Virus record (IMG/VR): IMGVR_UViG_3300023313_000001
Span: 165,508 to 229,507 of that record
Reading direction: 5' to 3' (one strand)
DNA: 64,000 nucleotides
Shown here: piece by piece, positions 5,643 through 62,051 of the stretch
How positions within the stretch are numbered: position 1 is the stretch's first letter
How the letters are laid out: the number at the start of each line of letters is the position of its first letter
Made by a program: the position numbers and the translations under genes
Notes under the pieces: generated by a model
Database searches by the model: none
Seen by the model: only the letters and a program-made list of their open reading frames with translations
Told to the model about the DNA's origin: nothing

Positions 5643-5646
5643 TTAT

Positions 5647-17554: not shown

Positions 17555-17906
17555 TAAGATGAAATATAATACAACTGGTTATCAAATACTAACAGATAGT
17601 GGGTTCAGACCGTTTGTGGGCATATCAATGATGGGAAAACAGATGCTCCTAAAGTTTGAGTTCAACGATGGAACATCAATTGAAGTTACTCCAGGCCATA
17701 AATTTATCTATAACACCAAACTGATTGACGGTGAGATTGTAGGTGTACCTATTCATGCAAACGTGTTGTCAGTGGGTGATCAAATATCCACGATGGATGG
17801 CGAAGTTGAGATCGTAAGTATATGTGAAAGCACTGACCAGCAAACGTACGATTTAATTGAGGTTGGTGATCACAAGTATAAAACTAACTCAGTAATATCC
17901 CACAAC
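17547..17906 (+). mobile_element. Split intein C fragment (about 120 aa)
   Basis: ILTDSGF..F.G; block B VTPGHKF; TYDLIEV..HKYKTNSVISHN|C. Confidence 0.9.
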
Positions 17907-47074: not shown

Positions 47075-47553
47075 TGCATTTTAGTGTCCCAATCGAGTTG
47101 CCCCCTAAAAAAATATCATATGACTGGGCGGATGTGTACTTTTTAGCTGAATTAGAACAAAGTACATATCAAGATGCCAAGATTATCACCCTCAAACAAT
47201 CGTTCAGAAACCAAATCTACCAACAAGCTCTCGATGTGGTACTATCCAAATACCCACATTGGGGATATACAACAAATAAGCGTGCAGAAAACTTTCTACG
47301 CAAAACTGAACGCGACTTATTAAAAGATTGTGAGGGATCTGTTCAAGAGCATATTGAGATTCTAGATAATGGTACAATATCTATTGTTGTGGACGTTGAT
47401 GATGCTAATAGTGATGCAGCCATAGATCGAGCATTAGAAATGTACTCAATGTACCGTGGTAACGGTGCCAGAGAGAATTTTGGTAGGCCAGTTACGTACG
47501 ACAAATCCCAATTTAATTTTGCAGAGTTTGTGGAAGATGAGTATCTATGTTAA
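47074..47553 (+). CDS. Hypothetical protein
   Basis: ORF coupled to neighbours. Confidence 0.5.
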   Translation: MHFSVPIELPPKKISYDWADVYFLAELEQSTYQDAKIITLKQSFRNQIYQQALDVVLSKYPHWGYTTNKRAENFLRKTERDLLKDCEGSVQEHIEILDNGTISIVVDVDDANSDAAIDRALEMYSMYRGNGARENFGRPVTYDKSQFNFAEFVEDEYLC

Positions 47554-48134
47554 TTGCTATCAGTGGATCTCAAGGGACTGGTAAATCCACGTTAATCTCT
47601 GCCTTGCAACAGCAATACAATTGTAATGTAGTTGAACGAAAAACTGCTAGATCAATACTATCCGATTGGAACACATCCCTAGATGAGGTTTACCAAACCC
47701 CTTCAACAATATGCAAATTTCAAGACGAATTATTGTGCAGGAAGTTTGCAGATGAGGCAGATGCACGAGCCAGTAATAATATATGGATCACTGAAAGATC
47801 ATTCGTAGACTTACTTGCATACTCCACAGCTAATATTGGGCGGTTAAATAAGTATAGTGACTGGCTAGAACGATATTATCAACAATGTACTACTAATCAA
47901 CAATACTATGACTATGTAGTTTACTTAAAAGGAGGGTCGTTTACTATTAAATCAGATGGTGTTCGACCTCATAACACTCAATACGGAGCCATGATAGATT
48001 TGTTCATGGAACACTACAATAAATCCACACTAGGGTCTCGATTGTCAATCATATCAGATACCGTGTTACAACACCGTGTTGATTACCTAGCTCCATACAT
48101 ACTAAAAAGGACTCACCATAATGTCTGCCCCTAA
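47547..48134 (+). CDS. P-loop nucleoside/nucleotide kinase (AAA_28/NadR-like)
   Basis: IAISGSQGTGKST, E..AR, ITERSFVD..AY, DGVR. Confidence 0.75.
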   Translation: MLIAISGSQGTGKSTLISALQQQYNCNVVERKTARSILSDWNTSLDEVYQTPSTICKFQDELLCRKFADEADARASNNIWITERSFVDLLAYSTANIGRLNKYSDWLERYYQQCTTNQQYYDYVVYLKGGSFTIKSDGVRPHNTQYGAMIDLFMEHYNKSTLGSRLSIISDTVLQHRVDYLAPYILKRTHHNVCP

Positions 48135-48450
48135 AACTATAATCATCGCAGTGATCAACAAGGACAATGTTCGTGTGTTTCAAAATACGATGGAACATCA
48201 GTCTATTAGCGCATACTTCATGACGCCAAACTTTGCTGAGTTTGCAGCAAATGCTGAAGTAGATTCTGATATGCTTTCATCAATATCCAATGGACTGACT
48301 GTGTTCATTCGACAGGAGTCTGAAATTAACAACACACTAAAATGGGCTAGAAATGCTGACGCTGTATGTGTCAGTGCTAGTGTAGCTCCAATCAAAGATA
48401 GTGACGATGTTCAAGTACTATTTCTTATTGAGATTGTCTCCAATGAATAA
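48121..48450 (+). CDS. Hypothetical protein
   Basis: ORF. Confidence 0.5.
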   Translation: MSAPKTIIIAVINKDNVRVFQNTMEHQSISAYFMTPNFAEFAANAEVDSDMLSSISNGLTVFIRQESEINNTLKWARNADAVCVSASVAPIKDSDDVQVLFLIEIVSNE

Positions 48451-49120
48451 ATTTACCACCCCTCTCAAATATGATCAAGGATCACTACCTACGGTGTCTA
48501 AAGACACCATGCATTATCACTATGAAAAACACTATCTTGGGTATTGTAAAAATCTTGCCAAAATAATTAAAAACACTAAGTATGATGATATGGAGTTGGA
48601 TAGCATAGTGGATATGTCTGCCCCATTAAATACCACACCAAACTCATCCAACCCAATATACAACAACGCCGCTCAAATTAAAAACCACGATTTCTTCTTC
48701 GAACAATTGACTCCAACATACTCAGATCTTGAAGATGGGGAACTTAAAAATTTAATAGTATCAGAATATGGATCAGTAGACAAATTGCTTAACCACTACA
48801 AAACCAAACTAACCAGTTTTTTTGGGGTAGGATGGGTGTGGCTCACACTAGAACAACATAAACAATGGGATTCTCCATCGATTAAAGTCGTAGCTACTCG
48901 TGATGGGAATACATTTATTAATCATAAATCTACTGAACACTTCGTTGGACCAATATGTGTGCTGGACGTATGGGAGCATTCATATTATATAGACCACAAG
49001 AACGACAGATCAGCCTATTTCGACAGTATAATCCAGTGCATTGATTGGGAAATCATATCTCAGAGGTTTTCTACCCACAGTTCTACTCTATTTGACTACA
49101 CCAAGCCGTTCGAACTGTAG
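48443..49120 (+). CDS. sodB: Fe/Mn superoxide dismutase (Fe-type AAQ signature)
   Basis: HYEKH..Y, NNAAQ..NH.FF, FG.GW.WL, DVWEHSYY. Confidence 0.9.
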   Translation: MNKFTTPLKYDQGSLPTVSKDTMHYHYEKHYLGYCKNLAKIIKNTKYDDMELDSIVDMSAPLNTTPNSSNPIYNNAAQIKNHDFFFEQLTPTYSDLEDGELKNLIVSEYGSVDKLLNHYKTKLTSFFGVGWVWLTLEQHKQWDSPSIKVVATRDGNTFINHKSTEHFVGPICVLDVWEHSYYIDHKNDRSAYFDSIIQCIDWEIISQRFSTHSSTLFDYTKPFEL

Positions 49121-49189
49121 TACAAACGTTGATATCTATGGGTAACAGAGGTATTGTTGTTGTACATTCATTACGCGAGTACAATAATA

Positions 49190-49720
49190 ATGCATGATCC
49201 TATAAAAACACTAGATAACGTCTACGGATTAACGTTAGATAGTAAAACCAAGGCCGTCCTCAGTATCAAGTACGATCATCCATTTACTACGTGGACGCAA
49301 TCTCAGTTTGAGGATGCTATAAATACAGTTCTAGGTGAGTCTCATTCACATACATTTATATCATTACATGATGCCAAATACACTTTAATGTACTTTGTTC
49401 AGAACTTGATATCATACGAACATCAAGGGTTGGTAACTGATCCGGCCGAAGTACTTCAATACTCCCGAATACAATCTACCACATTTCAACACACTAATGC
49501 CATTGCACTATCATTGGAAGATGGGTACGAAAATGATACCATTACTCATCGCACTGGAACCAAATCCGAACAGGCATATCAGATTTACTGTGAGAATATC
49601 GACAAGGAAGATGCTCGATCCGTTATAACGAAGTTATTCCAATCTGAATTAGATATGTCTACAGGTGGTAGTACTACTTATTTTCATAACTGCAAACGAC
49701 GGTATACATCCAACCTATAA
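49190..49720 (+). CDS. Hypothetical protein
   Basis: C-terminal ELDMSTGGSTTYFHN HTH-like segment. Confidence 0.5.
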   Translation: MHDPIKTLDNVYGLTLDSKTKAVLSIKYDHPFTTWTQSQFEDAINTVLGESHSHTFISLHDAKYTLMYFVQNLISYEHQGLVTDPAEVLQYSRIQSTTFQHTNAIALSLEDGYENDTITHRTGTKSEQAYQIYCENIDKEDARSVITKLFQSELDMSTGGSTTYFHNCKRRYTSNL

Positions 49721-49791
49721 AGTTCCCACAAAACCTTTGACTCTGATTATAGTATCTGTTATCATACTGAAATTATAATAGGAGTTTTCGT

Positions 49792-50172
49792 ATGGCAAGA
49801 ACAACAGAAGTATTCTGCACATTATCATTTGATGCAATCCATAATTGGGCAGACTGTCCGATTGAAGAGGTCACATTTTTACGACATCCTCACCGACATA
49901 TGTTTCATGTGAAAGCATGGACAAAAGTGCTACATGACGACAGAGATGTTGAATTTATCAATCTTAAACATGATATTTTGGAATATATTGATCATCGATT
50001 CACCAATGCATATCTAGATTTACCAACTACAGCACGAGTATACGACCTAAAATCCATGTCATGTGAAATGATTGCTGAAGTTCTTATGGATCAATTTTCA
50101 TTGTCTCGGTGCGAAGTTAGTGAGGATAATGAAAACGGTGCTATTGTCACTGAGGATACTATCAATGTGTAG
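49792..50172 (+). CDS. dpdL: QueD-like T-fold protein with LxxxHRHxF motif (DpdL-type, putative CDG decarboxylase)
   Basis: FDAIH, LRHPHRHMF (QueD CxxxHGH Cys replaced), DRDVEFI, SCEMIA, VSEDNENGA. Confidence 0.7.
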   Translation: MARTTEVFCTLSFDAIHNWADCPIEEVTFLRHPHRHMFHVKAWTKVLHDDRDVEFINLKHDILEYIDHRFTNAYLDLPTTARVYDLKSMSCEMIAEVLMDQFSLSRCEVSEDNENGAIVTEDTINV

Positions 50173-50383
50173 TAGTAGTGAGTTAGATTTAACCAGCGAT
50201 GAACTAGACAATGTAGCGCGTATAACAGCAAAGGCTGCTATAACTGATCCGTGTAGTTTAGAAATATTTGACAAACTTATGACACAGGGTGTTGGACGAT
50301 TTGAAGCATTGGGTCAAGCATTGTTCAACCAACACTTAGTTAGTGTGTTGAAGTTGGCAATGAATGAAGATGCTATCAAATAG
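50165..50383 (+). CDS. Hypothetical protein
   Basis: Short ORF overlapping previous stop. Confidence 0.45.
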   Translation: MCSSSELDLTSDELDNVARITAKAAITDPCSLEIFDKLMTQGVGRFEALGQALFNQHLVSVLKLAMNEDAIK

Positions 50384-51120
50384 TGTCTAACCGTAAATGG
50401 CATAATGAAAGTATAGACCATAAACTAGCTGATCGCAATATTGTTAGGGTTACGGATGTGTCTAATATACGTTCGCCATCTAATACTAAAATACAGTGGA
50501 TGTGTGAAGTATGTAATGGTGTTTGGTCAACTACTGTAGACAGTGTGATTAATTTAAACTCAGGATGTCCTCATTGTGCTGGCAACACCAAACTTACAGT
50601 AGTGGAATGTCAATATAGACTATCAGAATTGGATGTGTCTGTTATTAGTCTGGATGATTGTGGAACGTTTAACCATGAACGAAAGGGACAATTTGTTTGC
50701 AATAAATGTGATAATATATGGGAAACTACATTATCAAACATTTTTTCAAATAACCAAGGGTGTCCGAAATGTGGAAAGAGTGGTAGATATACTTCATCGT
50801 GGTTTGAATCAAACGATGGTTCGATTCCTGGCATACTGTATCTTATTAAATTATCTAACGACAATGAAGTGTTTATTAAGGTAGGTATAACAAAACATAC
50901 GCTTACTCACCGAATTGCTTCCATACCATACCAAGTGGATGTGTTGTATAAGTATCGTACAACACTGCACAACGCGTTTAATCTCGAACAAAGTATCAAG
51001 CATCAGTTTAATGCATACAACCCGACTATCAAGTTTGGTGGATGGACTGAATGTTTTCACAAAGATACATCTCAACAAATAATCAATTTTATCAAAGGAC
51101 ATTTACCATGCATTTATTAG
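50383..51120 (+). CDS. Homing endonuclease: two Zn ribbons plus GIY-YIG-like domain
   Basis: C..C..W....GCP.C twice; GILYLIKL..FIKVGIT..R; FGGWTECF. Confidence 0.72.
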   Translation: MSNRKWHNESIDHKLADRNIVRVTDVSNIRSPSNTKIQWMCEVCNGVWSTTVDSVINLNSGCPHCAGNTKLTVVECQYRLSELDVSVISLDDCGTFNHERKGQFVCNKCDNIWETTLSNIFSNNQGCPKCGKSGRYTSSWFESNDGSIPGILYLIKLSNDNEVFIKVGITKHTLTHRIASIPYQVDVLYKYRTTLHNAFNLEQSIKHQFNAYNPTIKFGGWTECFHKDTSQQIINFIKGHLPCIY

Positions 51121-51926
51121 ACAGAACCCCTGAATTTTGTATCATAGCACCAACACAATACTTGGAAGAGTATGCACTTCAATCCGAAAGCCATTTAATA
51201 TTAGCCCACTTAATCGATACAGACGATAGATACGCTGAATTCTATAAAGGTTTGTCCGAGGATCATTTGAAAATAATGGACAATGGGGCGTTCGAACTTG
51301 GAGAAAGTTACAATCCATCTAAGTTGATCGGGTTAGCTACTAAGTGTGGTGCAGACGTGATAGTGCTACCAGATTATCCATTCTGTGGTGGGTTTAAAAC
51401 TATAAACGCTGCCGAAGAGATTATTGATCAAATTAAAGCAGCTGGATTCAAAACTATGTTCGTCCCACAATCTCAAACGGGGGATACACAAGACTGGATC
51501 GATACATATAGTTGGGCTGCATCTCATCCAGATATTGATATTATAGGAATGAGTATTTTGGGAATACCAAATGCTATTCCACATATTCATAAAGGATATG
51601 CCAGAGTGGTAATGACTCAAATGTTAATTGACCTAAATGTATTTAATGCGGGAAAACATCATCACTATCTGGGATTAAACTCTGGTCCCAAACTAGAAAT
51701 TCCCTCACTAATACAAATGGGTGCATTAGACACATGTGACAGTTCGGCACCAGTCTGGGCAGCAATTGCTGGCCATAGATACTGTGTAAATACAGACAGT
51801 TACATGCACACTAGCAAAGTTCCTCTCCCAGTAGATTTCTCCCAACAAAGTACTACAAATATGGATGTACATGAAAATATTCAGTACAATATTGATCTAA
51901 CATTGATGCTATTTGACCAGATGTAA
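51108..51926 (+). CDS. TGT/DpdA-like TIM-barrel (putative 7-deazaguanine transglycosylase)
   Basis: IMDNGAFE, VLPD, M.VPQ, HYLG, TCDSS parallel TGT/DpdA DSGGF, H.LG, FDS; next to DpdL-like gene and QueE. Confidence 0.6.
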   Translation: MHLLDRTPEFCIIAPTQYLEEYALQSESHLILAHLIDTDDRYAEFYKGLSEDHLKIMDNGAFELGESYNPSKLIGLATKCGADVIVLPDYPFCGGFKTINAAEEIIDQIKAAGFKTMFVPQSQTGDTQDWIDTYSWAASHPDIDIIGMSILGIPNAIPHIHKGYARVVMTQMLIDLNVFNAGKHHHYLGLNSGPKLEIPSLIQMGALDTCDSSAPVWAAIAGHRYCVNTDSYMHTSKVPLPVDFSQQSTTNMDVHENIQYNIDLTLMLFDQM

Positions 51927-51989
51927 CGTTGACACAACTCAATGAGTTGTGTAGGCTGGATGGCTATACAACTCAATGAGGACCATATA

Positions 51990-52538
51990 ATGTTTATTGA
52001 CCCAAAGACTGCTATCGAAAACAACTGGATAACCCATCCAGAATGTAACACATTACAAGACTGGATAGATCGAAAGTATCTAGGACCAAATGCTATTGAT
52101 TTCACCCTAGATCAACTATACAGTATCAACCACCACAATTTATTCACTATAAGTGAAGACACCAAACAAATGCGTGGTGGAGAGTTGCTTGGAATAGCAA
52201 ATACTGACGCTGAAGGGAATGAGTACTGGACATTATCTGCTCATGAAACATACGATGGAATGTCCTCAATGACTTTAGACCTTCCTGTAGGGGTAGCTTG
52301 CCAATTAGTGATCAGATCTACATTCAATCGCAATGGAATCTATCTCACATCTGGTTTGTACGACTCCAAGTTCCAAGGAGCATGTGGTTTCGCATTGCAC
52401 AACAGATCTGGTCTAGCCATGGTACAAAAAGGTGTACGAGTCGGACAAATTATCTTTGTATCATCTAGTTCAGACAGAGAATATGCTGGTGGCTGGAATC
52501 ATGCAGCTGGAACACATTGGTCAGAAACAAATGAGTAA
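51990..52538 (+). CDS. Trimeric dCTP deaminase/dUTPase family protein
   Basis: PNAIDFTL, RSTFNRNG, GLYDSKFQG, RVGQIIF, YAG.W. Confidence 0.8.
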   Translation: MFIDPKTAIENNWITHPECNTLQDWIDRKYLGPNAIDFTLDQLYSINHHNLFTISEDTKQMRGGELLGIANTDAEGNEYWTLSAHETYDGMSSMTLDLPVGVACQLVIRSTFNRNGIYLTSGLYDSKFQGACGFALHNRSGLAMVQKGVRVGQIIFVSSSSDREYAGGWNHAAGTHWSETNE

Positions 52539-53145
52539 TATAGTCCCAACAGGACATTTCAGTAAATTTCTTTGTATGGATTCGGAGACTAGTGGGGTTG
52601 CATTTGACTCAGCTGATCCTACCCACAATAGTAATACTGGTGAAACCTACCAATCAATTTCATGGGGATTAGTTGTAGTAGATTCCGTTACACTCACCCC
52701 GATCGATAAACTGTACGTTGAAATTAAATGGAATGGAGTGTCCACCTGGAGCTCTCAAGCTGAACAAATACATGGACTATCAAAACAACACCTAGACCAA
52801 CATGGCATGGATGAACAGGATGCTGCATGTGAGATTGCATCGTTTATTTTAGACCACTTTGATTCAAACACATCGGTCAATGTAGCTGGGCATAACGTAG
52901 CAACGTTCGATATGGCATTCATGCGACAACTACTGTCAAAGTATGGTATCATGTTTAAATGTTCCCACAGGTTCATTGACACCAACTCAATTGGATTCGC
53001 AGCATTCGACACCTATACATCGGATCAACTGTTTGAGTTAGTTGGTATTGAACGTAAACAACATAATTCACTAGAAGACGCTATGGCAGTGGTACGGGTG
53101 CTGCGTGTAACTAGGCAACTGTACAATACTATACTAGGAGACTGA
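52531..53145 (+). CDS. DEDDh 3'-5' exonuclease (DnaQ/RNase T-like)
   Basis: DSETSG, A..IHG, GHNVATFD..F, IDT, HNSLEDA. Confidence 0.88.
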   Translation: MSNIVPTGHFSKFLCMDSETSGVAFDSADPTHNSNTGETYQSISWGLVVVDSVTLTPIDKLYVEIKWNGVSTWSSQAEQIHGLSKQHLDQHGMDEQDAACEIASFILDHFDSNTSVNVAGHNVATFDMAFMRQLLSKYGIMFKCSHRFIDTNSIGFAAFDTYTSDQLFELVGIERKQHNSLEDAMAVVRVLRVTRQLYNTILGD

Positions 53146-53146
53146 C

Positions 53147-53419
53147 ATGAAAACGATATACAAATTGATGTTATGTAAGAGAACTAGTAGGTATCGTATC
53201 ATGGTGTACACCCCAATATCATCTAACTCACATGTGAGATTTACGCATACTTGGACTGATGATAATGGTCAGCTATTTAATATGAACTGGTTACAGACGT
53301 CCAACACTCCACTATCTATAGTACAATTCGATAGCGAAGAAGTTGCCAAAATTGCTATTGATGATCTACAGCGGGTATACGATATGGACAAGTACATTGA
53401 TGTTAGTTGTAGTACATAA
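53147..53419 (+). CDS. Hypothetical protein
   Basis: ORF with AGGAG RBS. Confidence 0.5.
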   Translation: MKTIYKLMLCKRTSRYRIMVYTPISSNSHVRFTHTWTDDNGQLFNMNWLQTSNTPLSIVQFDSEEVAKIAIDDLQRVYDMDKYIDVSCST

Positions 53420-53649
53420 TCCAATGTTGTACTACAGACATTGCAGAAATCTGTATTCAAAACAACACGTTACATAACATACATGAGATTAATGTTGACT
53501 GCATACCAATATACTCGTATTCTACTCCCCAAGTCCCCAGGTATTGGGGATTAAGAACTTTTTATCACTTATGTTGATAAAAGGGTTGTAATAGTACCCG
53601 TTTTCGGGTATAATAATTGAACATAGTATTGGAACCAAGAGGATTTACG

Positions 53650-54129
53650 ATGAATAATGTATCTACACTTAATTGGCAGCAACGTCTTGCCATTATTAGT
53701 AAACTAGCTCCAACAGATGAACGAGCATCTAAAGTTTTTGGTGTATCTGTTGATGAAATCAACACAGCACGAGATTCTATCACAGCAGATGAGAATTTTG
53801 ATGTAACACCATTCGCATCACAATTTACAACAACTGCTACAACAACTACAACAACAACAACTGCTACATCTACTGCAACAGGTATAAAGAAAAAACGTGG
53901 ACGTACTGGCAGTCGTGTAATCAATGCGTTTGCTAATGTATCATCCACACCAGTTGCGTTGGCTGACTTTGCCACTGCAAACAATGTGTCTGAAAATGTG
54001 TTACGCCAAGTTAAACGGTTTACTCACAACAATCAGGGAACTGTTCTTCCACAATTTGAACACAAAACTATTCGAGTTGGTAAGCGTGATGGTACATCTT
54101 GTATCTGGTTAGACGAAGTCTCTGCATAA
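53650..54129 (+). CDS. Hypothetical two-domain basic protein with poly-Thr linker (possible DNA-binding)
   Basis: FGVSVDEI HTH-like; TTTATTTTTTTTATSTAT; KKRGRTG; own promoter and terminator. Confidence 0.55.
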   Translation: MNNVSTLNWQQRLAIISKLAPTDERASKVFGVSVDEINTARDSITADENFDVTPFASQFTTTATTTTTTTTATSTATGIKKKRGRTGSRVINAFANVSSTPVALADFATANNVSENVLRQVKRFTHNNQGTVLPQFEHKTIRVGKRDGTSCIWLDEVSA

Positions 54130-54151
54130 CACAGTTATCCAATACTCATTT

Positions 54152-54178
54152 AAAGAGGGCATATGCCCTCTTTTTTTT
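54152..54178 (+). terminator. Intrinsic terminator
   Basis: aaagagggc-atat-gccctctttttttt. Confidence 0.85.
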
Positions 54179-54263
54179 ATGAGGAAGAGATTATTTGAGT
54201 CTTTTGTCTTGAATAAACAATAATTATCTAGTATAGTGATGGCATAATACCAGGAGGTACATC

Positions 54264-55178
54264 ATGGCAACAGATCCCACATTCAAATATTCAGAAATAT
54301 TTGCCAGTCTACAGGGCGAGGGTGCATATACTGGGCATGCTACTGCGTGGATTCGATTCTTTTTATGTAACCTGTCATGCGACGGGTTTGGACAATCTGA
54401 TCCAACAGATCCGTCCACGTATGTTTTACCATACAAAGATTTAGATTTAGTTGATATTAAAACTATAGAAGAGCTCCCTGTTTTTTCATATGGCTGTGAT
54501 AGTTCCTATACCTGGTCTAAGCGGTATAGACACTTAGCTAAAAATCACACTGCAGTAGAAATATGTAACCAAATACAAAAAGTTTACACACACCCATCAA
54601 ACCCTGATGGGTTGTTTCATCATCCCACTAGCGGTCAAGACACCCATATGGCATTCACTGGCGGAGAACCAATGCTAAATCAACGAGCAATTCGTTGTAT
54701 TTTAGAAGAGTTTGCAGATCGTAACAACTATCCTAAATTTGTTACAGTAGAAACTAATGGAACTAGACCATTCAAAAAAGACAATCTGAATACATTAATC
54801 GACTTCAGTTTCAACAACAGTAGCAGTAGAGAATGGTTTTGGTCTTGCAGTCCAAAATTATTCTCAACAAGTGGAGAAAAAGAAAAAAAAGCAATTCGAC
54901 CAGATGTAGTTGCATCATATGCCAATGTTAGTAATCATGGACAACTGAAGTATGTTGTAGATGGTTCTGACCTTAGTTGGAGTGAGGTCGAACGACATAC
55001 AAAATCATTTAGGGATGCTGGGGTAGATTGGGATGTGTACATAATGCCAGTAGGGGCTACTAAAGAATCACAAGAGGAAGATCGAATTGCTGAAATATCT
55101 ATAGAAGCAATTCAACGAGGATATAATGTATCAGGACGGTTACACTGCTATATCTTTGGTAACAAAATCGGAACATAA
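54264..55178 (+). CDS. queE: 7-carboxy-7-deazaguanine synthase QueE (radical SAM)
   Basis: SEIFASLQGEG..G..IRF..CNLSC..CDS, TGGEPML, ETNGT, SPKL, RLH..IFG. Confidence 0.9.
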   Translation: MATDPTFKYSEIFASLQGEGAYTGHATAWIRFFLCNLSCDGFGQSDPTDPSTYVLPYKDLDLVDIKTIEELPVFSYGCDSSYTWSKRYRHLAKNHTAVEICNQIQKVYTHPSNPDGLFHHPTSGQDTHMAFTGGEPMLNQRAIRCILEEFADRNNYPKFVTVETNGTRPFKKDNLNTLIDFSFNNSSSREWFWSCSPKLFSTSGEKEKKAIRPDVVASYANVSNHGQLKYVVDGSDLSWSEVERHTKSFRDAGVDWDVYIMPVGATKESQEEDRIAEISIEAIQRGYNVSGRLHCYIFGNKIGT

Positions 55179-55197
55179 TTAATACATAAGGAATACT

Positions 55198-55626
55198 ATG
55201 GCTGAAAAAATATACAGAGCTGGACTAATTCCAGTATACATCGATTCTGATAAGGAAATGCATATGTTGTTTATGCAACCATCCGATACTAGATATGGTG
55301 GATCAGATTACCAAATTGCTAAAGGTAGAATCGAAGAAGATGAGGAACCATACGATACTGCAATACGAGAAGCTGGTGAGGAGCTAGGGTTACGTCCAGA
55401 TAACATGACTGATGTGTATGATTGTGGCAGATGGCTTGGACGAACCTATTTTTATGTCGCAATAGTCGCAGATAAAGAGGATTTTGGGGATTTTCATTTC
55501 GAAACAGCTAGCACTAAATGGATGACACCAATGGAATTCGCTAAGAATGGTCGTGATATTCATCGCGAAGTGGTGCGCCACGCTACTAACATTGTGGAAA
55601 TGGCAACAATGTATACCGATATTTGA
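55198..55626 (+). CDS. Nudix hydrolase
   Basis: Nudix box KGRIEEDEEPYDTAIREAGEELG. Confidence 0.9.
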   Translation: MAEKIYRAGLIPVYIDSDKEMHMLFMQPSDTRYGGSDYQIAKGRIEEDEEPYDTAIREAGEELGLRPDNMTDVYDCGRWLGRTYFYVAIVADKEDFGDFHFETASTKWMTPMEFAKNGRDIHREVVRHATNIVEMATMYTDI

Positions 55627-57584: not shown

Positions 57585-58112
57585 ATGAATGAACCAATTG
57601 AGTTTTCAATAATCAACACCAATATTACACCATCCACCACTCGTGTTTCACCTTCTGACCTACGAACTGAAACTGAAACTGAAATTCATTTAGATGCATC
57701 CACATCAACTAGATCTATTCTGGGCGGACATATCGTTCCTTCTGAAATTCCTTTAGGAAACGACAACGTAGGAATTGCATCTAGTGAAGCAAATATTGAC
57801 TCGTTTATTAACGTACAGGTCGACATGCTACAACGCCTGTACTCTGGAATGTATATCATGTCGCAAACGTTCTATCATATCTATGGTGATGAAAAACTGG
57901 CGATGTGTAAAGTTGCACTAGACGAAAACCTATTTGCCCCCCTTATTAGAGTGTACCCACAATTGGAAGATTTCGAATATCACTTGGAACTAGATGACGA
58001 CTGTCAAATTGTGGTGATTGGTGAGAATACGTTTGCAAAAACATTATTGCATGCAATTCAACAGTCGCTCGACGCTCCAATATCTGACACCGAACCCACC
58101 ATATTGTCGTAA
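57585..58112 (+). CDS. Hypothetical protein
   Basis: TTGACC-17-TATAAT-like promoter, AAGGA RBS. Confidence 0.55.
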   Translation: MNEPIEFSIINTNITPSTTRVSPSDLRTETETEIHLDASTSTRSILGGHIVPSEIPLGNDNVGIASSEANIDSFINVQVDMLQRLYSGMYIMSQTFYHIYGDEKLAMCKVALDENLFAPLIRVYPQLEDFEYHLELDDDCQIVVIGENTFAKTLLHAIQQSLDAPISDTEPTILS

Positions 58113-58224
58113 GTCCAATTTGTGGGGTATACAGTAGCTGTACATACCCCACAAATTATTCCCCAACTTCCCAGTCAACCATAAATACTCTCATATAAAT
58201 TAACGCTAGTTAAGGAAAATTTTT

Positions 58225-58536
58225 ATGCGAACTATCAGCATCCCTTTGGCCCTAGTTAGGGGACCAAGCATTGATATGGTAATTGAGATATTGCAAGCAA
58301 TACAGGATAGTGTTACTGAGCACAGCGACATATTTGAGTACAGTGTAGAGGAAGCTCTCACCCGTATTCACCAGGACATTGACGATGCCATCATTGATAC
58401 TGCAGAAACCTATCCAAATGCTATTAATATGGACTACATGATGGTGTATAACGGGGTAGCATGTGACTTTCTTCCTTGCAATGAATACACAGACGAAGTA
58501 GTTAATATCATGCAAGGAATATTAGGCGAACCCTAG
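58225..58536 (+). CDS. Hypothetical protein
   Basis: AAGGA RBS, late promoter at 58180. Confidence 0.5.
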   Translation: MRTISIPLALVRGPSIDMVIEILQAIQDSVTEHSDIFEYSVEEALTRIHQDIDDAIIDTAETYPNAINMDYMMVYNGVACDFLPCNEYTDEVVNIMQGILGEP

Positions 58537-58569
58537 ACATTATTAATGAGCTGATATATCATACGGCTC

Positions 58570-58905
58570 ATGAAAACATACAATATCAGACCAATACTAC
58601 TCACCTTTGTGGTCCTCAATATACTAGACCTAATATCAACAATATACCTTACTCAAATATACGGAATAGATGTTGAACAAGCCCCATTAGCTAAACATGC
58701 CCTTGAACTATTTGGTATAGTTGGATTATTACTAATTAAAGTGATTCCAATCGGATGCATTGTCGCTATCATTATTAACTACAAACCATATGTGATGATT
58801 CGCGCAATATTCTTTTGTAACTTCATTTTTACTGGAATTGTTATCAATAATCTAGGATGGATATATCTATCTCATAACCCAATACTAACACTTATCTATT
58901 CTTAA
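58570..58905 (+). CDS. Small membrane protein (three TM, LD..ST..E.P pattern)
   Basis: Hydrophobic segments; LNILDLISTIY..EQAPL..K..NN. Confidence 0.6.
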   Translation: MKTYNIRPILLTFVVLNILDLISTIYLTQIYGIDVEQAPLAKHALELFGIVGLLLIKVIPIGCIVAIIINYKPYVMIRAIFFCNFIFTGIVINNLGWIYLSHNPILTLIYS

Positions 58906-59164
58906 CATCCTGAATCTCTAATTTAAACGACTTCAACATTAATTTCGCAGTATTGATTGTCCATACAGGCATCCCTATAAACCCACCTTCATTATTTGTT
59001 CCAAATAATCCAAATATTTGATCATCATCCCTAGCTTCAGGATCGTACGCAACGTAATACGTCCCTGTTTGAGTTAAAACCTTCCTAACATCTAAATGAT
59101 GATTTAGGACATCATTAATCCAATCAACTACCATCGTTCTATTGTATAATGTTCGTTTGATCAT
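58892..59164 (-). CDS. Hypothetical protein
   Basis: ORF. Confidence 0.5.
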   Translation of the reverse strand: MIKRTLYNRTMVVDWINDVLNHHLDVRKVLTQTGTYYVAYDPEARDDDQIFGLFGTNNEGGFIGMPVWTINTAKLMLKSFKLEIQDVKNR

Positions 59165-59176
59165 ATTAGTTCCATT

Positions 59177-59199
59177 AAAAAAGGGGGCAAATACCCCCT
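59177..59199 (-). terminator. Intrinsic terminator
   Basis: agggggt-attt-gcccccttttttt on minus strand. Confidence 0.7.
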
Positions 59200-59224
59200 C
59201 TCAATTCATTTATTAACTAGTTGA

Positions 59225-60484
59225 TTACTCACTAAGCAACGCATTGCTTAAATACGAAGTAAACCCTTCCCCAGTCATAGATAATCTTTGAGATTTAACA
59301 AAAGCCTTAATATTATGCTCAACTTCACCCATCTCCATATCATCTACCTCAGCCCATCTTCCACCATCTTGACTACCATCATCAAAATTAACAAACTGAC
59401 CTGTCGCTAAATCATACTCAAAATCAAACTTAGACGGTATACTATCACCATCTTGCCCAGTTAAATACCCGTCGTAACCATGGCCAAATACAGTCTGACT
59501 AGATCGATCATACTCCAGCCCTGCAAAATCACTACTCTCCTCATTCTCCATACTTACATCATCTTTATCATAATCACTATAGTCAGTAGACATCGATCCG
59601 CCTTCATCCCGCGCCAAATCATTCTCATAAGAATCATCAATATCACTCCCATAATCCCTATCACCCTTCATCATCATGTCATCTTGAGCAAAATCTTCAG
59701 GATAATCACCGTCAGTTCCCTCAACACCATCACTTCCCATCTTGAAAGCCCTATCACCACCAGGCTTGACACGACCGTCAACTACTCCATTAGAATGCGA
59801 CGGCTTCGTAATATCCTTCTCAGCCCACTGACCATCATCAATGTCACCAAAGCTATCATACTCTGGCTCACTGTCACCATACTCAACTTCATAGTCAGGC
59901 TCATAATCCTTAGGCGCAAACTCCTCATTCTCATAATGATCAGGCTCATACTCTGGATTACCATCATACTCTGGCTCACTGTCACCATAATGATCAGGCT
60001 CGTAATCACTATTCTCCTCATTCTCGTACTCTACCTCCCCAACTCCATTAATAGGCAAATCATAATCATCTTGATTACTACTGCCAACCATTGCAGATGG
60101 CATAGACTGCCCAACATCATCCGAATAAGCACCCAAATTAGTAAAATAATCGTCAACGTCAAAACTCTCCAATTCCTCATTCTCAGCATCTACCTGATTC
60201 TGAACCAATCGATTGACAAATCCCCTGATCTTATTCAAATTACCCATCACACGCTGCGCATGCTTAACCTTCTCAGTACCAGCAGGCAACTTGTTAACAA
60301 AACCTAAACCACGCTTGGCAGCATCTAACATCTTAACCGCCTGCTCAATGTCCTTACTATCAAAATTGAGTCGCTCACTCAACGCAACTAAACACCTCGT
60401 GGCATTAAGAACACCCTCATGTAATAATACACTTCGCTCACTATCCTCAGCTAACTGTACCCCTTCCCATAACCCTTTTAACAT
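59225..60484 (-). CDS. Highly acidic late protein with YEPD/YGDSEPEY repeats (possible internal head protein)
   Basis: TATAAATA at 60518-60525(-), GGAG RBS; D/E/Y-rich repeats; ENEE motifs. Confidence 0.65.
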   Translation of the reverse strand: MLKGLWEGVQLAEDSERSVLLHEGVLNATRCLVALSERLNFDSKDIEQAVKMLDAAKRGLGFVNKLPAGTEKVKHAQRVMGNLNKIRGFVNRLVQNQVDAENEELESFDVDDYFTNLGAYSDDVGQSMPSAMVGSSNQDDYDLPINGVGEVEYENEENSDYEPDHYGDSEPEYDGNPEYEPDHYENEEFAPKDYEPDYEVEYGDSEPEYDSFGDIDDGQWAEKDITKPSHSNGVVDGRVKPGGDRAFKMGSDGVEGTDGDYPEDFAQDDMMMKGDRDYGSDIDDSYENDLARDEGGSMSTDYSDYDKDDVSMENEESSDFAGLEYDRSSQTVFGHGYDGYLTGQDGDSIPSKFDFEYDLATGQFVNFDDGSQDGGRWAEVDDMEMGEVEHNIKAFVKSQRLSMTGEGFTSYLSNALLSE

Positions 60485-60557
60485 CAATGTTCTCCAACAA
60501 TATTCTATATGTGCTCCTATTTATATAACAACTCTACATTTCATCCCTTTTTAGCAC

Positions 60558-60677
60558 CTATACATACGATAATATCGAAAATACTATCCATACCATCACT
60601 ATCGCAAACACCACAGGCACCACTACCGAAATAACCCCTAACAAACCCCTTATCATTCCATTTAATACTTTTATCAT
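60558..60677 (-). CDS. 39-aa hydrophobic peptide (below ORF-track cutoff)
   Basis: MIKVLNGMIRGLLGVISVVVPVVFAIVMVWIVFSILSYV; GGGAGG upstream. Confidence 0.4.
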   Translation of the reverse strand: MIKVLNGMIRGLLGVISVVVPVVFAIVMVWIVFSILSYV

Positions 60678-60732
60678 CCATCCTCCCAGACCAACCATGT
60701 AACCCTATTTACCGTCAATAAACTATAAACAT

Positions 60733-60764
60733 AAAAAAAGGGCGATATCTTTCAATATCACCCT
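60733..60764 (-). terminator. Intrinsic terminator
   Basis: agggtgatat..atatcgcccttttttt on minus strand. Confidence 0.75.
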
Positions 60765-60858
60765 CAGGTACTACTAAGGAGGCGCCTCAATCAATTAATG
60801 GCCAATCTCTTGAGACATAACTACCTTAACACATTACTATCATTGAGTCAACAATTAT

Positions 60859-61131
60859 CTAAAACCTACACATATACACATAACGCGCGTGACGATCGTT
60901 AATCCTTAACCACCTACTACTACCATACGCACCAATGATTACATCATACCTAGCACCATTAGTCGCCGTCAATGTACAATACACCACCCTATTAACATTA
61001 TTCCGCAAACTAACCCAATATACCGCAGCATTACCAACATAACCAACCCTTGTACTGGACGTTACTGCACCCAATACACTACCACTCACCATTAATACTA
61101 ATACTAATACTACCCTTATCCAAATCTTCAT
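60859..61131 (-). CDS. Small secreted protein
   Basis: AGGAG RBS; MKIWIRVVLVLVLMVSGSVLGA signal peptide; two Cys. Confidence 0.55.
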   Translation of the reverse strand: MKIWIRVVLVLVLMVSGSVLGAVTSSTRVGYVGNAAVYWVSLRNNVNRVVYCTLTATNGARYDVIIGAYGSSRWLRINDRHARYVYMCRF

Positions 61132-61284
61132 AACATAATCTCCTACATATGCAGTACTTATCAAAAAAACTCTATACAACTCAAAAATTTTTAGAAATTT
61201 TTTTGAATTAGACAATTTCAATATAAGAAATCGTTTCAAATCCATAATATAGGGAATTATATCACGATAATAACAGTTTTGGGT

Positions 61285-61364
61285 AACCAATAATTAGGAT
61301 AATCTTGAAAAAACTTTTGAACCAATAATTAGGATAATCTTGAAAAAACTTTTGAACCAATAAT
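61285..61364. repeat. 35-bp tandem direct repeat, 2.3 copies, non-coding
   Basis: aaccaataattaggataatcttgaaaaaacttttg twice plus aaccaataat. Confidence 0.9.
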
Positions 61365-61495
61365 GTTGCCCCTCGATCGTAGCACCCGTACGCAGGAAGT
61401 CAACAAAAAATTTATTATGTTAGGACAATCGAGATCCGGATGCTGATCTGAGCCTATGCCCCTACTATACAGCATGTTGACTTAGACTCATGAGT

Positions 61496-61726
61496 CTATA
61501 TATTGCTGTCATCCACATATGACTGTACATAATCCTCATCTGATGGACACAATGATCGAGACGACTCACATCCTAACACCCTGGTTTCCATCCATTCAAT
61601 GATATCTGCACGATCGGACATACTGTTTGATGTATCGAACACAAACTCATCAATTAGATCAAACAGTCTAGAATTGTCGTGGAAGCTGTCTCTAATTTCA
61701 GATGCCATAATTCTAACAGCTGTCAT
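61496..61726 (-). CDS. Small early protein
   Basis: AAGGAG RBS in promoter cassette; MTAVRIMASE.. Confidence 0.6.
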   Translation of the reverse strand: MTAVRIMASEIRDSFHDNSRLFDLIDEFVFDTSNSMSDRADIIEWMETRVLGCESSRSLCPSDEDYVQSYVDDSNI

Positions 61727-61790
61727 AATGGATCTCCTTAATGAATTAGACCCCATTATAATACAATAGGGTCTAAAGGTCAACGATTGT

Positions 61791-62051
61791 TTATATGTTC
61801 ATATCGCGAGTGGACTTGCGAATCTTTTCGAGAGCTCGCCAAACTGAGTGAAGTTGTTTACTTCTGTTTCTCACAAAAGCGATTGAAGCTTCCCCATCGC
61901 ATGATATGTTTTCGGGGCTAAGTTGACATTCAAGGCGTTGAAAGAATGGTTCACATTCTTCAGCATTGGTAGGTCTAACCAGTTCAGGTTGTTTAAAGTG
62001 TTTAGCTTCCCAACCGTTGAACTCATTAATATATTTGTTAAGTGCAGTCAT
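61791..62051 (-). CDS. Small early protein
   Basis: GAGGAG RBS; LSPENISCDGE motif. Confidence 0.65.
   Translation of the reverse strand: MTALNKYINEFNGWEAKHFKQPELVRPTNAEECEPFFQRLECQLSPENISCDGEASIAFVRNRSKQLHSVWRALEKIRKSTRDMNI

Follow-up and report, generated by a model that had tools for sequence, protein, structure and literature searches.

Does a group of seven genes in an uncultured phage genome, in which enzymes of 7-deazaguanine synthesis are interleaved with enzymes of nucleotide metabolism, encode the replacement of guanine in the phage DNA, a known anti-restriction trick, and if so, is the base exchanged in finished DNA, as currently proposed, or on free nucleotides before replication? 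We addressed this question in a window of 64,000 nucleotides, which represents the last 64 kb of IMG/VR contig 3300023313_000001 (229.5 kb, microbial mat).

Gene content of the locus

All seven genes named in a preliminary description of the sequence (QueE, a QueD paralogue, a TIM barrel, a P-loop kinase, a 'dCTP deaminase/dUTPase', a DEDDh exonuclease and a Nudix hydrolase) were recovered on the + strand at or near the positions proposed there (Table 1). That description had not mentioned a superoxide dismutase, a homing-endonuclease-like gene wedged between DpdL and the barrel, or four ORFs without assignment. In addition, tblastn revealed no FolE, QueD or QueC homologue in the window, as the description had stated. 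Note that this arrangement is not due to chance, since the order DpdL, DpdA3-like, DCD-like, exonuclease ... QueE, Nudix, with the kinase upstream, recurs in at least 16 other IMG/VR contigs that display only 54-64% DpdA3 identity.

Table 1. Features identified in the window between positions 47547 and 55626; labels starting with L denote sampled loci.
Position	Strand	Assignment	Supporting data
47547..48134	+	P-loop nucleotide/nucleoside kinase (AAA_28 / dNK type); proposed to phosphorylate the 7-deaza-dG nucleotide	Pfam AAA_28 2.6e-19, dNK 1.8e-8; phrog_2107 'thymidylate kinase'; Walker A GSQGTGKST; homologue on the same contig as DpdA3-like in 10 related loci, upstream in 9
48121..48450	+	ORF of 109 aa, no assignment	No Pfam or PHROG hit; JGI gene call
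48443..49120	+	Fe/Mn superoxide dismutase, link to the pathway unknown	Sod_Fe_C 4.7e-25, Sod_Fe_N 9.4e-14; JGI gene call; weak homologue in L011
49190..49720	+	Conserved ORF of 176 aa upstream of DpdL, function unknown	Homologues upstream of DpdL in L011, L012, L020 and L021; no family hit; atlas search uninformative
49792..50172	+	DpdL, QueD-paralogous T-fold protein; proposed CDG decarboxylase giving 7-deazaguanine	LRHPHRHMF at residues 30-38; 38% identical to phiST DpdL (CGPG_00067), 41% to the Vibrio phage D479 homologue; phrog_17812 3.8e-21; AF2 pLDDT 92.6, best PDB matches E. coli QueD 4ntk and PTPS homologues
50165..50383	+	Small ORF of 72 aa, no assignment	JGI gene call; no homologue in related loci
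50383..51120	+	Homing-endonuclease-like insertion (treble-clef Zn fingers plus T5orf172/GIY-YIG-like domain)	DUF4379 1.6e-13, T5orf172 6.6e-4, MUG113 4.3e-4; DpdL and DpdA3 adjacent in most relatives
51108..51926	+	DpdA3-family transglycosylase-like TIM barrel; proposed to exchange guanine for 7-deazaguanine	MDNGAFE, HHHYLG and CDSS; hhalign 99.9% full-length to the phiST (8e-32) and immuto 2-6A (4e-33) DpdA3; AF2 pLDDT 95.2, pTM 0.92; Foldseek PDB top five hits TGT, E 1.4e-7; BFVD hit to phiST M4SLA5, TM 0.82; D58, H186 and D211 invariant in 68 diverse homologues; no Zn CxCxxC..H motif
51990..52538	+	dUTPase/DCD-superfamily NTP pyrophosphatase without the deaminase Glu; proposed dGTP-removing and dGMP-supplying enzyme	Pfam DCD 4.7e-8; start probably 51990, not 51942; profile versus PDB 9w59 'probable dUTPase' 5e-22, then DCDs
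52483..53145	+	DEDDh (DnaQ-like) 3'-5' exonuclease, probably a replicase proofreading subunit	RNase_T 1.5e-5; phrog_192 'DNA polymerase exonuclease subunit' 3.6e-19; Pol III epsilon NCBIfam hits below cut-off; conserved after the DCD-like gene in the jumbo relatives
53629..54129	+	Conserved ORF of 166 aa with a Thr-rich low-complexity stretch, function unknown	Homologues upstream of QueE in at least 8 related loci; no significant family hit
54152..54173	+	Terminator-like hairpin followed by a T-run, separating the upstream genes from QueE-Nudix	9-bp stem with 5 GC pairs, 4-nt loop, then TTTTT
54264..55178	+	QueE (7-carboxy-7-deazaguanine synthase), phage type with unusual Cys spacing	phrog_2076 'QueE-like radical SAM' 7.6e-53; 42-46% identical to the QueE of Aeromonas phage Ahp1 and Vibrio phage nt-1; C35, C39 and C78 invariant across phage QueE including phiST and immuto; bacterial QueE equivalog models only 28-40 bits, below their cut-offs
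55198..55626	+	Nudix hydrolase with intact Nudix box; candidate second (d)GTP-clearing enzyme	NUDIX 1.7e-13; G-x5-E-x7-REAGEELGL; homologues follow QueE, and precede QueD in L017 and L021

Affiliation to the phiST-type pathway

The identities proposed in the preliminary description held up when tested. Indeed, the protein with the LxxxHRHxF motif, which the description gave as a mark of DpdL, is a DpdL: the motif is kept in 22 of 23 homologues and matches that reported by Cui et al. 2023. The barrel displays a predicted TGT fold and is a full-length member of the DpdA3 family; however, sequence profiles alone do not link DpdA3 to TGT, and this link rests on fold and motif comparison. In contrast, the 'dCTP deaminase/dUTPase' had to be corrected, since the Glu of the DCD 'TLELxN' motif aligns to Ala here and in the family consensus (the 9w59 dUTPase has Met there), making it a pyrophosphatase-type member of the superfamily. 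In addition, nothing ties the exonuclease to the modification.

The genes absent from the window were found on the same contig near 38-41 kb, where FolE (2e-54), QueD (5.9e-17, CxxxHGY), a second NMP-type kinase (AAA_17/18, homologous to phiST CGPG_00066 with an E of 1e-12) and a deoxyribosyltransferase-like gene are located. This completes the gene set of phiST, whose product is 100% dDG (2'-deoxy-7-deazaguanosine), and the identity of the pathway is therefore already published (Cui et al. 2023). Moreover, DpdL and QueC never co-occur in the 121 loci sampled (45 DpdL loci and 12 QueC loci without overlap), and no QueC lies in the window or in L036, although only about 76 kb of the 229.5-kb genome was covered by this search.

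We are thus highly confident that the region encodes a DpdA3/DpdL/QueE deazaguanine pathway, best explained as the distal part of a phiST-type dDG genome-modification pathway in a myovirus-like phage, even if the catalytic activities and the presence of dDG in the virion are inferred. In this pathway, FolE and QueD (about 38-40 kb into the contig) would convert GTP to CPH4, QueE would make 7-carboxy-7-deazaguanine (CDG), DpdL is proposed to decarboxylate CDG to 7-deazaguanine, and the DpdA3-family barrel would swap 7-deazaguanine for guanine by TGT-like chemistry through two conserved Asp residues (D58 and D211).

Level at which guanine may be exchanged

The preliminary description also inferred a pre-replicative route from the kinase and the Nudix enzyme. 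This inference is not proven, but our comparative data, which are the new element here, make it stronger. We favour the reading that the swap is made on a deoxyguanosine nucleotide (most simply dGMP) and not on polymerised DNA. The DCD-like pyrophosphatase, and perhaps the Nudix enzyme, would hydrolyse dGTP to dGMP, which removes the competitor and supplies the substrate; the P-loop kinase, with the second NMP-type kinase next to QueD, would re-phosphorylate 7-deaza-dGMP; and host NDP kinase and the phage replicase would then put 7-deaza-dGTP into DNA, giving complete replacement of G. No enzyme of this locus has been assayed, and we consider this nucleotide-level mechanism only slightly more likely than not, whereas the whole scheme, pathway and mechanism together, stands at about even.

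This reading first relies on the kinases. A recognisable kinase, from one of several kinase Pfam families, is present in 32 of 49 DpdA3-like loci, and a nucleotide kinase sits beside DpdA3 in all three characterised phages with 100% G replacement. As an example, DpdA3-like is fused C-terminally to DUF3310 in RHph_I1_18 EVB91_073 and in P0132, P0150, P0159 and P0161 (our labels), while a free-standing DUF3310 gene lies immediately next to it, or one gene away after the DCD-like gene, in L116, L070, L071 and L079. T7 gp1.7, a dTMP/dGMP kinase (PMC11897194, citing Tran 2012), is the DUF3310 archetype (4.5e-23); however, DUF3310 is a 60-residue domain whose role within gp1.7 is not defined, and it could be a binding or oligomerisation module and not the catalytic part. 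Other kinase families occupy the same slot, namely DNMK in D479, Ahp1 and L062, AAA_18 in phiST, and AAA_28 in the window, immuto gp203 and CP220 gp057.

An NTP (pyro)phosphohydrolase was likewise found in 37 of 49 loci, being DCD-like in 36 (in most of these next to or within about 2 kb downstream of DpdA3-like), MazG in phiST, PRA-PH in immuto gp208, and HD fused to a kinase in CP220 gp055. In CP220, the HD-kinase, DpdA3, kinase trio forms an island inside structural genes. Moreover, the DCD-like subfamily occurs in only four of 50,697 phage records, which are exactly the four with the closest DpdA3-like. Note that the specificity of this enzyme cannot be read from sequence, and its closest solved relative is annotated as a dUTPase.

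As a control, we compared 80 QueD-centred loci: those with DpdA3 have a kinase in 10 of 12 and an NTPase in 11 of 12, while those without have 2 of 68 for each (Fisher p 2.5e-9 and 8.7e-11, respectively). This control set is biased, because the queries were taken from DpdA3-linked examples. In addition, DpdA3 lacks the TGT Zn subdomain and is very acidic in this phage (pI 4.8, charge -18; family median pI 5.8). DpdA3 phages show 100% G replacement, and DpdA3 and DpdL gave no product when expressed alone in E. coli (Cui et al. 2023).

Alternative readings

The main alternative, which remains possible although we hold it less likely, keeps the same pathway and product (dDG) but assumes that DpdA3 works as published for the DpdA family, exchanging guanine for 7-deazaguanine in already replicated phage DNA. 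Indeed, every characterised TGT/DpdA enzyme acts on a polynucleotide, Cui et al. propose a post-replicative step for all subfamilies, and the fold (predicted) and catalytic motifs are TGT-like. Kinases and dUTPase-like genes are also common in large phages, and in this window they lie in a replication module (clamp loader, helicase), so that the kinase, DCD-like enzyme, Nudix and exonuclease could be ordinary nucleotide-pool and replication genes that merely share an early or replication module with DpdA3; the dUTPase annotation mentioned above points the same way. However, this reading does not explain the repeated DpdA3::DUF3310 fusions, the replacement of one kinase family by another in the same slot, the CP220 island, the near-absence of these genes from QueD loci without DpdA3, or the restriction of the DCD-like subfamily to DpdA3 phages. 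In addition, we infer that complete replacement of roughly 87,000 G per genome copy would be kinetically demanding for a post-replicative exchanger, and the acidity and missing Zn subdomain of DpdA3 also speak against it.

It is unlikely that the base enters the nucleotide pool by salvage, through a 6-oxopurine phosphoribosyltransferase (in relatives) or the nucleoside deoxyribosyltransferase-like protein (in this genome), followed by kinases and ribonucleotide reductase, with DpdA3 playing another role such as destroying dG nucleotides by N-glycosidic cleavage or mopping up residual G in DNA. A Pribosyltran gene closest to purine and hypoxanthine-guanine PRTs (E about 1e-6) does lie in 21 of 49 DpdA3-like loci and in immuto 2-6A, and a PF15891 deoxyribosyltransferase-like gene sits next to FolE and QueD in this genome and within about 3 kb of DpdA3-like in L013 and L023. 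However, the window has no PRT, and the 16.7-kb phiST region examined around its deazaguanine cluster shows neither a PRT nor an NDT-like gene, yet phiST is 100% dDG. PRT is not significantly enriched with DpdA3 (7 of 12 versus 20 of 68, p 0.09), so it may simply recycle released guanine into GTP, and DpdA3 keeps both TGT catalytic Asp motifs and the base-binding motif, which fits exchange and not hydrolysis.

Finally, a role in tRNA queuosine/archaeosine-type modification or general pterin metabolism, or a barrel that is not a transglycosylase at all, with unmodified phage DNA in each case, appears very unlikely: although no chemistry was measured, sequence profiles alone do not reach TGT and QueE scores below the bacterial equivalog cut-offs, the barrel is a full-length homologue of the DpdA3 proteins of phages whose DNA was shown by LC-MS to be fully modified, the fold search puts TGT first, and DpdL, QueE, QueD and FolE co-occur with it in dozens of phage contigs.

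Gene content of the region and of a second locus on the same contig

The interval 47547-55626 carries 13 co-directional genes (see the table below), and the observation made in the preliminary description, i.e., a probable 7-deazaguanine DNA-modification pathway with nucleotide-pool enzymes, is confirmed. Indeed, the motifs that it reported (seen as LRHPHRHMF for the QueD-like protein, and MDNGAFE, HHHYLG and CDSS for the barrel protein) can be read directly in the translations, and tblastn with phage FolE, QueD and QueC finds no such gene in the window, in agreement with that description. Comparison of the region at the DNA level (megablast against 50,697 phage records) found nothing, and promoter-like sites were no more frequent than in shuffled sequence. 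Among the ORFs without assignment, the ORF at 49190-49720 gave no lead in an Atlas search. The homing-endonuclease-like gene is inserted between DpdL and DpdA3, which are adjacent in most relatives, and its stop overlaps the DpdA3 start by 13 nt; weak homologues sit near DpdA3 in three related loci (L014, L015 and L018). The superoxide dismutase, for which only one related locus (L011) has a weak homologue in the same place, lies between the kinase and DpdL and may protect the oxygen-sensitive radical-SAM QueE, but this remains speculation.

The barrel protein is encoded on JGI contig Ga0256748_1000001 (IMGVR_UViG_3300023313_000001), a contig of 229,507 bp from a microbial-mat metagenome, of which the window is the last 64 kb (165508-229507). 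Other window genes (tail sheath, large terminase, helicase, clamp loader and at least five ~550-aa HNH homing endonucleases) show a myovirus-like large phage. One of these endonucleases sits directly after the large terminase ORF and overlaps the next ORF, which suggests a terminase gene interrupted by a mobile element. In addition, GC skew drops sharply (-0.30 to -0.35) where coding switches to the minus strand, marking a change of transcription or replication direction near the contig end.

A search of IMG/VR with an alignment of phage QueD proteins returned the same contig at 38.3 kb. This second locus (hereafter L036) encodes, in order, an AAA_17/18 NMP-type kinase, QueD, FolE, a PF15891 nucleoside-2-deoxyribosyltransferase-like protein and a TROVE/Ro60-vWA protein, the last of which hints at an RNA-quality-control module. 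The genome therefore has FolE, QueD, QueE, DpdL and the barrel, which is the gene set linked to complete replacement of dG by 2'-deoxy-7-deazaguanosine (dDG) in Cellulophaga phage phiST (Cui et al., NAR 2023, PMC10516641).

Coordinates of the features in the window, in the second locus of the same genome (L036) and in other DpdA3-like or related loci
Locus	Coordinates	Feature	Support
Window	47547-48134	P-loop kinase	AAA_28 2.6e-19, dNK 1.8e-8; Walker A GSQGTGKST
Window	48121-48450	ORF without assignment	
Window	48443-49120	Fe/Mn superoxide dismutase	
Window	49190-49720	ORF without assignment	
Window	49792-50172	Weak PTPS/QueD-like protein (DpdL)	PTPS 0.0043; phrog_17812 3.8e-21
Window	50165-50383	ORF without assignment	
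Window	50383-51120	Zn-finger/T5orf172 homing endonuclease-like gene (treble-clef Zn fingers plus T5orf172/GIY-YIG-like domain)	
Window	51108-51926	ORF with no Pfam hit (DpdA3-family barrel, predicted fold)	phrog_20335 only
Window	51942/51990-52538	DCD/dUTPase-superfamily protein	
Window	52483-53145	DEDDh exonuclease	
Window	53629-54129	Conserved ORF upstream of QueE, without assignment	Long Thr/Ala low-complexity run, no family hit
Window	53565-53984 (-)	Overlapping ORF, looks spurious	
Window	54264-55178	QueE	phrog_2076 7.6e-53 over the whole length
Window	55198-55626	Nudix hydrolase	NUDIX 1.7e-13
Window	1909-3666 (-), 5632-7245 (+), 7998-9674 (-), 15923-17554 (+), 32342-34012 (+)	Paralogous ~540-585 aa HNH homing endonucleases	phrog_3339/phrog_559, E 1e-99 to 1e-130
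Window	14251-15936	Large terminase ORF	
Window	17547-18668	Next ORF, overlapped by an HNH endonuclease	
Window	58000-62000	Sharp drop of GC skew	Coding on the minus strand, for example 59225-60487
L036	5983-6498	QueD	PTPS 5.9e-17, with CNAIHGY
L036	6792-7583	FolE	2e-54
L036	8338-8856 (contig ~40.6-41.1 kb)	PF15891 nucleoside-2-deoxyribosyltransferase-like gene	5.7e-26; best PDB match the uncharacterised 4mcj
L036	9560-11107	TROVE/Ro60-like protein with a vWA domain	TROVE 4.9e-29
L062	1857-2381	Phosphoribosyltransferase (PRT) closest to purine and hypoxanthine-guanine PRTs	E ~1e-6
L070	6452-6970	PRT, as above	E ~1e-6
L071	6670-7155	PRT, as above	E ~1e-6
L114	6822-7217	PRT, as above	E ~1e-6
L070	5382-5990	2OG-Fe(II) oxygenase gene	
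L071	5393-5983	Similar position (not scanned)	
L118	1-2818 and 4034-4687	Family-A DNA polymerase with a UDG domain and an intein, and MT-A70 methyltransferase	

Identity of the encoded proteins

The QueD-like protein carries the DpdL motif LxxxHRHxF in place of the QueD CxxxHGH motif (LRHPHRHMF at residues 30-38), is 38% identical to phiST DpdL (CGPG_00067) and 41% identical to its counterpart in Vibrio phage D479. The motif is kept in 22 of 23 homologues, while the genome's own QueD has CNAIHGY, and the motif definition is confirmed in Cui et al. The AF2 model (pLDDT 92.6) supports a QueD/PTPS T-fold, since the top 19 PDB hits are QueD/PTPS homologues, mostly E. coli QueD (4ntk, E 5.9e-6, TM 0.67-0.70). 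However, sequence-level support for this fold is weak, with the faint PTPS match and an hhalign probability of 72% over 43 columns to phage QueD, and the decarboxylation of CDG to 7-deazaguanine remains a proposed activity, unproven even for phiST DpdL.

The barrel protein has 961 homologues at 90% clustering in the 5.8-billion-protein set and 1,201 clusters at 50% identity, many of them on 100-350 kb contigs; fully G-substituted genomes may therefore be common among uncultured large phages. A profile of 68 sequences aligns end to end with the DpdA3 of phiST (CGPG_00065; hhalign 99.9%, E 8e-32 over 253 columns) and with that of immuto 2-6A (gp206; 99.9%, E 4e-33 over 255 columns), thus placing the protein in the DpdA3 subfamily. 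AF2 gives a confident (beta/alpha)8 barrel (pLDDT 95.2, pTM 0.92, eight beta-alpha units), whose five best PDB matches are tRNA-guanine transglycosylases (TGT; E 1.4e-7 to 5e-6, TM 0.56-0.66); more broadly, ranks 1-5 and 7 are TGT/QTRT1 (E 1.4e-7 to 2e-5, TMq 0.56-0.66), and generic aldolase barrels score lower. In the viral structure library (Foldseek against BFVD), the best matches are the Rhizobium phage homologue (TM 0.89) and phiST DpdA3 (M4SLA5, TM 0.82/0.86, rmsd 2.4), with phage 'queuine tRNA-ribosyltransferases' further down. Therefore, the non-TGT fold that would have spoken against the preliminary description was not found. Note that sequence profiles alone do not reach TGT, since neither the single sequence nor the 68-sequence profile gave a TGT hit against PDB sequences and hhalign of the profile against E. 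coli Tgt was not significant; the TGT link thus rests on fold search and motifs. D58, H186 and D211 are invariant, and D89 nearly so, in the 68 homologues, and by order and pattern these motifs appear to correspond to the E. coli Tgt motifs TDSGGFQ (D89), FDECTP (D143), YLMGVGKPE and IDMFDCVMP (D264), although this correspondence is a motif-level inference. The Zn-binding CxCxxC..H segment is absent.

QueE is 42-46% identical to annotated phage QueE, whereas bacterial NCBIfam equivalogs reach only 28-40 bits against cut-offs of 200-300, so this is the phage QueE clade and not a bacterial equivalog. C35, C39 and C78 are invariant in five phage QueE, but their spacing is C-x3-C-x38-C here, with a ~32-residue insert shared with the QueE of Aeromonas phage Ahp1 and of the distant locus L070, and C-x3-C-x7-C in phiST and immuto; none has the canonical CxxxCxxC.

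For the DCD-like protein, alignment with 19 orthologues puts the start at Met17, position 51990. The family profile best matches PDB 9w59, a 'probable dUTPase' (5e-22), and then dCTP deaminases. In the profile alignments to the DCD structures 4xjc and 2qxx, the catalytic Glu of the deaminases (the G..(I/V)TLE motif, TLELxN) aligns with Ala in the window's protein (FALHN) and in the family consensus, and the 9w59 dUTPase has Met there. N50, D53, R125, S126, R130, D141, G146 and Q169 are invariant, including the motif-3 Asp. The protein is therefore a pyrophosphatase-type member of the superfamily, of unknown specificity, and the dCTP deaminase alternative of the preliminary description's 'dCTP deaminase/dUTPase' was rejected. 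Finally, the Nudix box (GX5EX7REUXEEXGU) is read in the translation as G-RIEED-E-EPYDTAI-REAGEELGL, while the MutT, NudB and RppH models all score far below their cut-offs.

Conserved gene context and closest known systems

In at least 16 other IMG/VR contigs, with DpdA3 only 54-64% identical, the same order recurs: kinase ... DpdL, DpdA3, DCD-like, exonuclease ... QueE, Nudix (and QueD). More distant loci carry compact cassettes, namely QueE, 2OG-oxygenase, QueD, PRT, FolE, DpdL, DpdA3, DCD-like, DUF3310 in L070; DpdA3, DUF3310, DCD-like in L071, L079 and L116; and ... DpdA3, DCD-like, DNMK kinase, QueD in L062. Among isolated phages, D479 and Ahp1 have DpdL, DpdA3, DNMK kinase, DCD-like, and RHph_I1_18 has a DpdA3::DUF3310 fusion followed by the DCD-like gene; four further representatives (P0132, P0150, P0159 and P0161) carry the same fusion. 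DUF3310 is the Pfam domain of T7 gp1.7 (4.5e-23), which phosphorylates dTMP and dGMP (PMC11897194, citing Tran et al. 2012). In contrast, a suspected DpdA3::NadR-kinase fusion in Bacillus phage BSTP12 was rejected, since the protein has only 262 aa and the name is a mis-annotation, and a faint 'Phage_T7_kinase' hit in another locus (L120) was ignored. In the three phages with measured 100% replacement, the arrangements are MazG, DpdL, AAA_18 kinase, DpdA3 (phiST), PRT ... PRA-PH pyrophosphatase, DpdA3, DpdN, AAA_28 kinase (immuto 2-6A), and HD::AAA_33, DpdA3, AAA_28 kinase, as an island among capsid and tail genes (CP220).

Over 49 DpdA3-like loci, 36 have the DCD-like gene and 37 have some NTPase, 32 have a recognisable kinase (DUF3310 in 12, AAA_28 in 12, immuto-type in 5, DNMK in 4 and AAA_17/18 in 1), and 21 have a purine-PRT-like gene. 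Since the deazaguanine genes of phage nt-1 are scattered and thus uninformative as a negative control, QueD loci without DpdA3 were used instead. Among 80 QueD-centred loci, those that include DpdA3 have a kinase in 10 of 12 and an NTPase in 11 of 12, and those without have 2 of 68 for each (Fisher p 2.5e-9 and 8.7e-11). However, this control is biased towards the query subfamilies because the queries came from DpdA3-linked genes. Of the four exceptions among the loci without DpdA3, one is the window's own genome (L036, kinase), and the rest fall on two short contigs (L040, NTPase only; L049, both) that carry the DCD-like gene near the QueD match. Independently, tblastn of the DCD-like protein against the 50,697 phage records finds only four records, which are exactly the four with the closest DpdA3-like gene. 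In addition, DpdL and QueC do not overlap between the 45 DpdL loci and the 12 QueC loci sampled, and no QueC lies in the window or L036, although about 150 kb of this genome was not read; in the loci sampled, this fits 7-deazaguanine, and not preQ0 or ADG, as the base made here.

The closest characterised system is that of phiST, which has the same five-gene enzymatic set, the same three invariant Cys in QueE, and a kinase (CGPG_00066) with a homologue next to QueD in this genome. However, the two DpdA3 are only about 24% identical, the genes are here split between two loci about 175 kb apart, the NTPase is DCD-like plus Nudix where phiST has MazG, and there is an extra AAA_28 kinase, an SOD and a homing endonuclease inserted between DpdL and DpdA3. 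In immuto 2-6A and CP220, DpdA3 is flanked by an AAA_28 kinase, as in the window, and by an NTP phosphohydrolase, but these phages make other derivatives and their hydrolases are PRA-PH/MazG-like or HD, not DCD-like. Indeed, the immuto 2-6A record carries QueF and the formyltransferase DpdN, Cui et al. report QueC for it and propose a QueC-like ADG synthase for CP220, and no DpdL was found in the immuto 2-6A region examined.

The closest isolated-phage relatives of the window's DpdA3-like (30-38% identity) and DCD-like (25-35%) proteins are found in the uncharacterised cassettes of Vibrio phage D479, Aeromonas phage Ahp1_CNU-2021, Rhizobium phage RHph_I1_18 and Vibrio phage Bakedbeans. D479, Ahp1 and RHph_I1_18 share the gene order, with FolE nearby, while in Bakedbeans the DpdL, DpdA3-like and DCD-like matches are spread over about 13 kb. 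Their kinase is DNMK (T4 gp1 type) or a fused DUF3310, where the window has AAA_28; all are annotated 'hypothetical', with no DNA chemistry reported in the literature searched. Compared with bDpdA, DpdA1 and DpdA2 DNA-guanine transglycosylases and bacterial/eukaryotic TGT, the predicted TIM-barrel fold is shared, and the motifs D-[SN]-G-[GA]-F-[QE], YL.G..G and G.D..D[SC]..P appear to occur in the same order as in E. coli Tgt, but the protein is about 100 residues shorter. Those enzymes modify 0.1-30% of G, whereas DpdA3 phages reach 100%.

Substrate level of the proposed exchange

The steps from GTP to H2NTP (FolE), to CPH4 (QueD) and to CDG (QueE) are established by homology, whereas the conversion of CDG to 7-deazaguanine (DpdL) and the exchange for guanine (DpdA3) are proposed in the literature. 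We infer that this exchange is made on a dG nucleotide, since DpdA3 is repeatedly fused or adjacent to nucleotide kinases, unrelated kinase and NTP-hydrolase families replace one another in the same slot, and these genes track DpdA3 and not the base-synthesis genes. Moreover, DpdA3 has lost the Zn subdomain and is acidic (pI 4.8 here; family median 5.8), DpdA3 phages replace all G, and DpdA3 plus DpdL alone gave no dDG in E. coli (Cui et al.). In the simplest scheme, dGTP would be hydrolysed to dGMP by the DCD-like enzyme or the Nudix, dGMP plus 7-deazaguanine would give 7-deaza-dGMP plus guanine by DpdA3, and phosphorylation by the phage kinase and host NDK would be followed by polymerisation. 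Candidate genes for the dNTPase, the base-changing enzyme and the dNMP kinase are present and their linkage to DpdA3 is conserved and specific, but none of these activities is shown, and the nucleotide-level reading is therefore only suggested.

In its strongest form, which we consider about as likely as not, DpdA3 would not be a DNA transglycosylase but a guanine:7-deazaguanine exchange enzyme acting on dGMP or a related dG nucleotide, forming an obligate triad with a dGTP-clearing pyrophosphatase and a dedicated kinase. The 7-deazaguanine genomes with 100% replacement (phiST, CP220, immuto 2-6A, and this jumbo-phage clade with about 1,000 homologues in metagenomes) would then be built pre-replicatively from 7-deaza-dGTP. 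The same logic is found, as an analogy only, in T4 hmC (dCTPase gp56, dCMP hydroxymethylase gp42, dNMP kinase gp1) and in Z-genome phages (PurZ, MazZ, DatZ), in which a dNTP pyrophosphatase removes the canonical dNTP and supplies the dNMP, an enzyme remakes the base at the monophosphate level, a dedicated kinase returns it to the pool, and replacement is complete. Here, however, the base-changing enzyme would be a transglycosylase exchanging a whole pre-made base, which has no precedent at the nucleotide level.

The identity of the pathway as a DpdA3/DpdL system is already known, but the comparative case that DpdA3 systems are triads of exchanger, kinase and dNTPase working on the nucleotide pool does appear to be new, as no paper proposing or testing it was found in the literature searched, and recent papers still cite 7-deazaguanines as the example of nucleic-acid-level modification. 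7-Deazaguanines are the main known guanine modifications of phage DNA, they defeat restriction enzymes and some CRISPR nucleases, and they are now known targets of bacterial glycosylase defences. If the swap is made on nucleotides, the failure of DpdA3 and DpdL alone in E. coli is explained by the missing kinase and dGTPase, a minimal gene set is defined for making fully 7-deaza-G DNA in vivo, and a base-exchange enzyme is added to the short list of pre-replicative strategies (hmC, hmU, Z).

The published view, exchange in DNA, remains a serious rival that we regard as possible though less likely; the nucleotide-level route was inferred without read-level or chemical data (only assembled contigs are public for the sample, and the RNA run from the same sample holds none of the sequence). 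A salvage route through the PRT or the deoxyribosyltransferase-like protein is an unlikely, minor alternative. Note that the purine-PRT-like gene is a frequent member of the deazaguanine clusters, being detected by tblastn in further loci including 10 jumbo relatives (L007, L008, L010, L011, L016-L018 and L020-L022), but it is also present in 20 of 68 QueD loci without DpdA3 and is absent from the window; in the relatives, it would recycle the released guanine or alternatively salvage the deaza base. The deoxyribosyltransferase-like gene lies about 0.75 kb downstream of FolE, with QueD just upstream, and its homologues lie 2-3 kb upstream of DpdA3-like in the loci L013 and L023; it is a possible alternative base-exchange or dGMP-cleaving enzyme.

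In L070, the 2OG-Fe(II) oxygenase gene sits between QueE and QueD in a compact DpdL-DpdA3 cassette, and this may point to a further, undescribed derivative of 7-deazaguanine in that phage. In addition, a distant DpdA3-like locus (L118, 27% identity) sits beside a family-A DNA polymerase that carries a UDG domain and an intein, and beside an MT-A70 methyltransferase.
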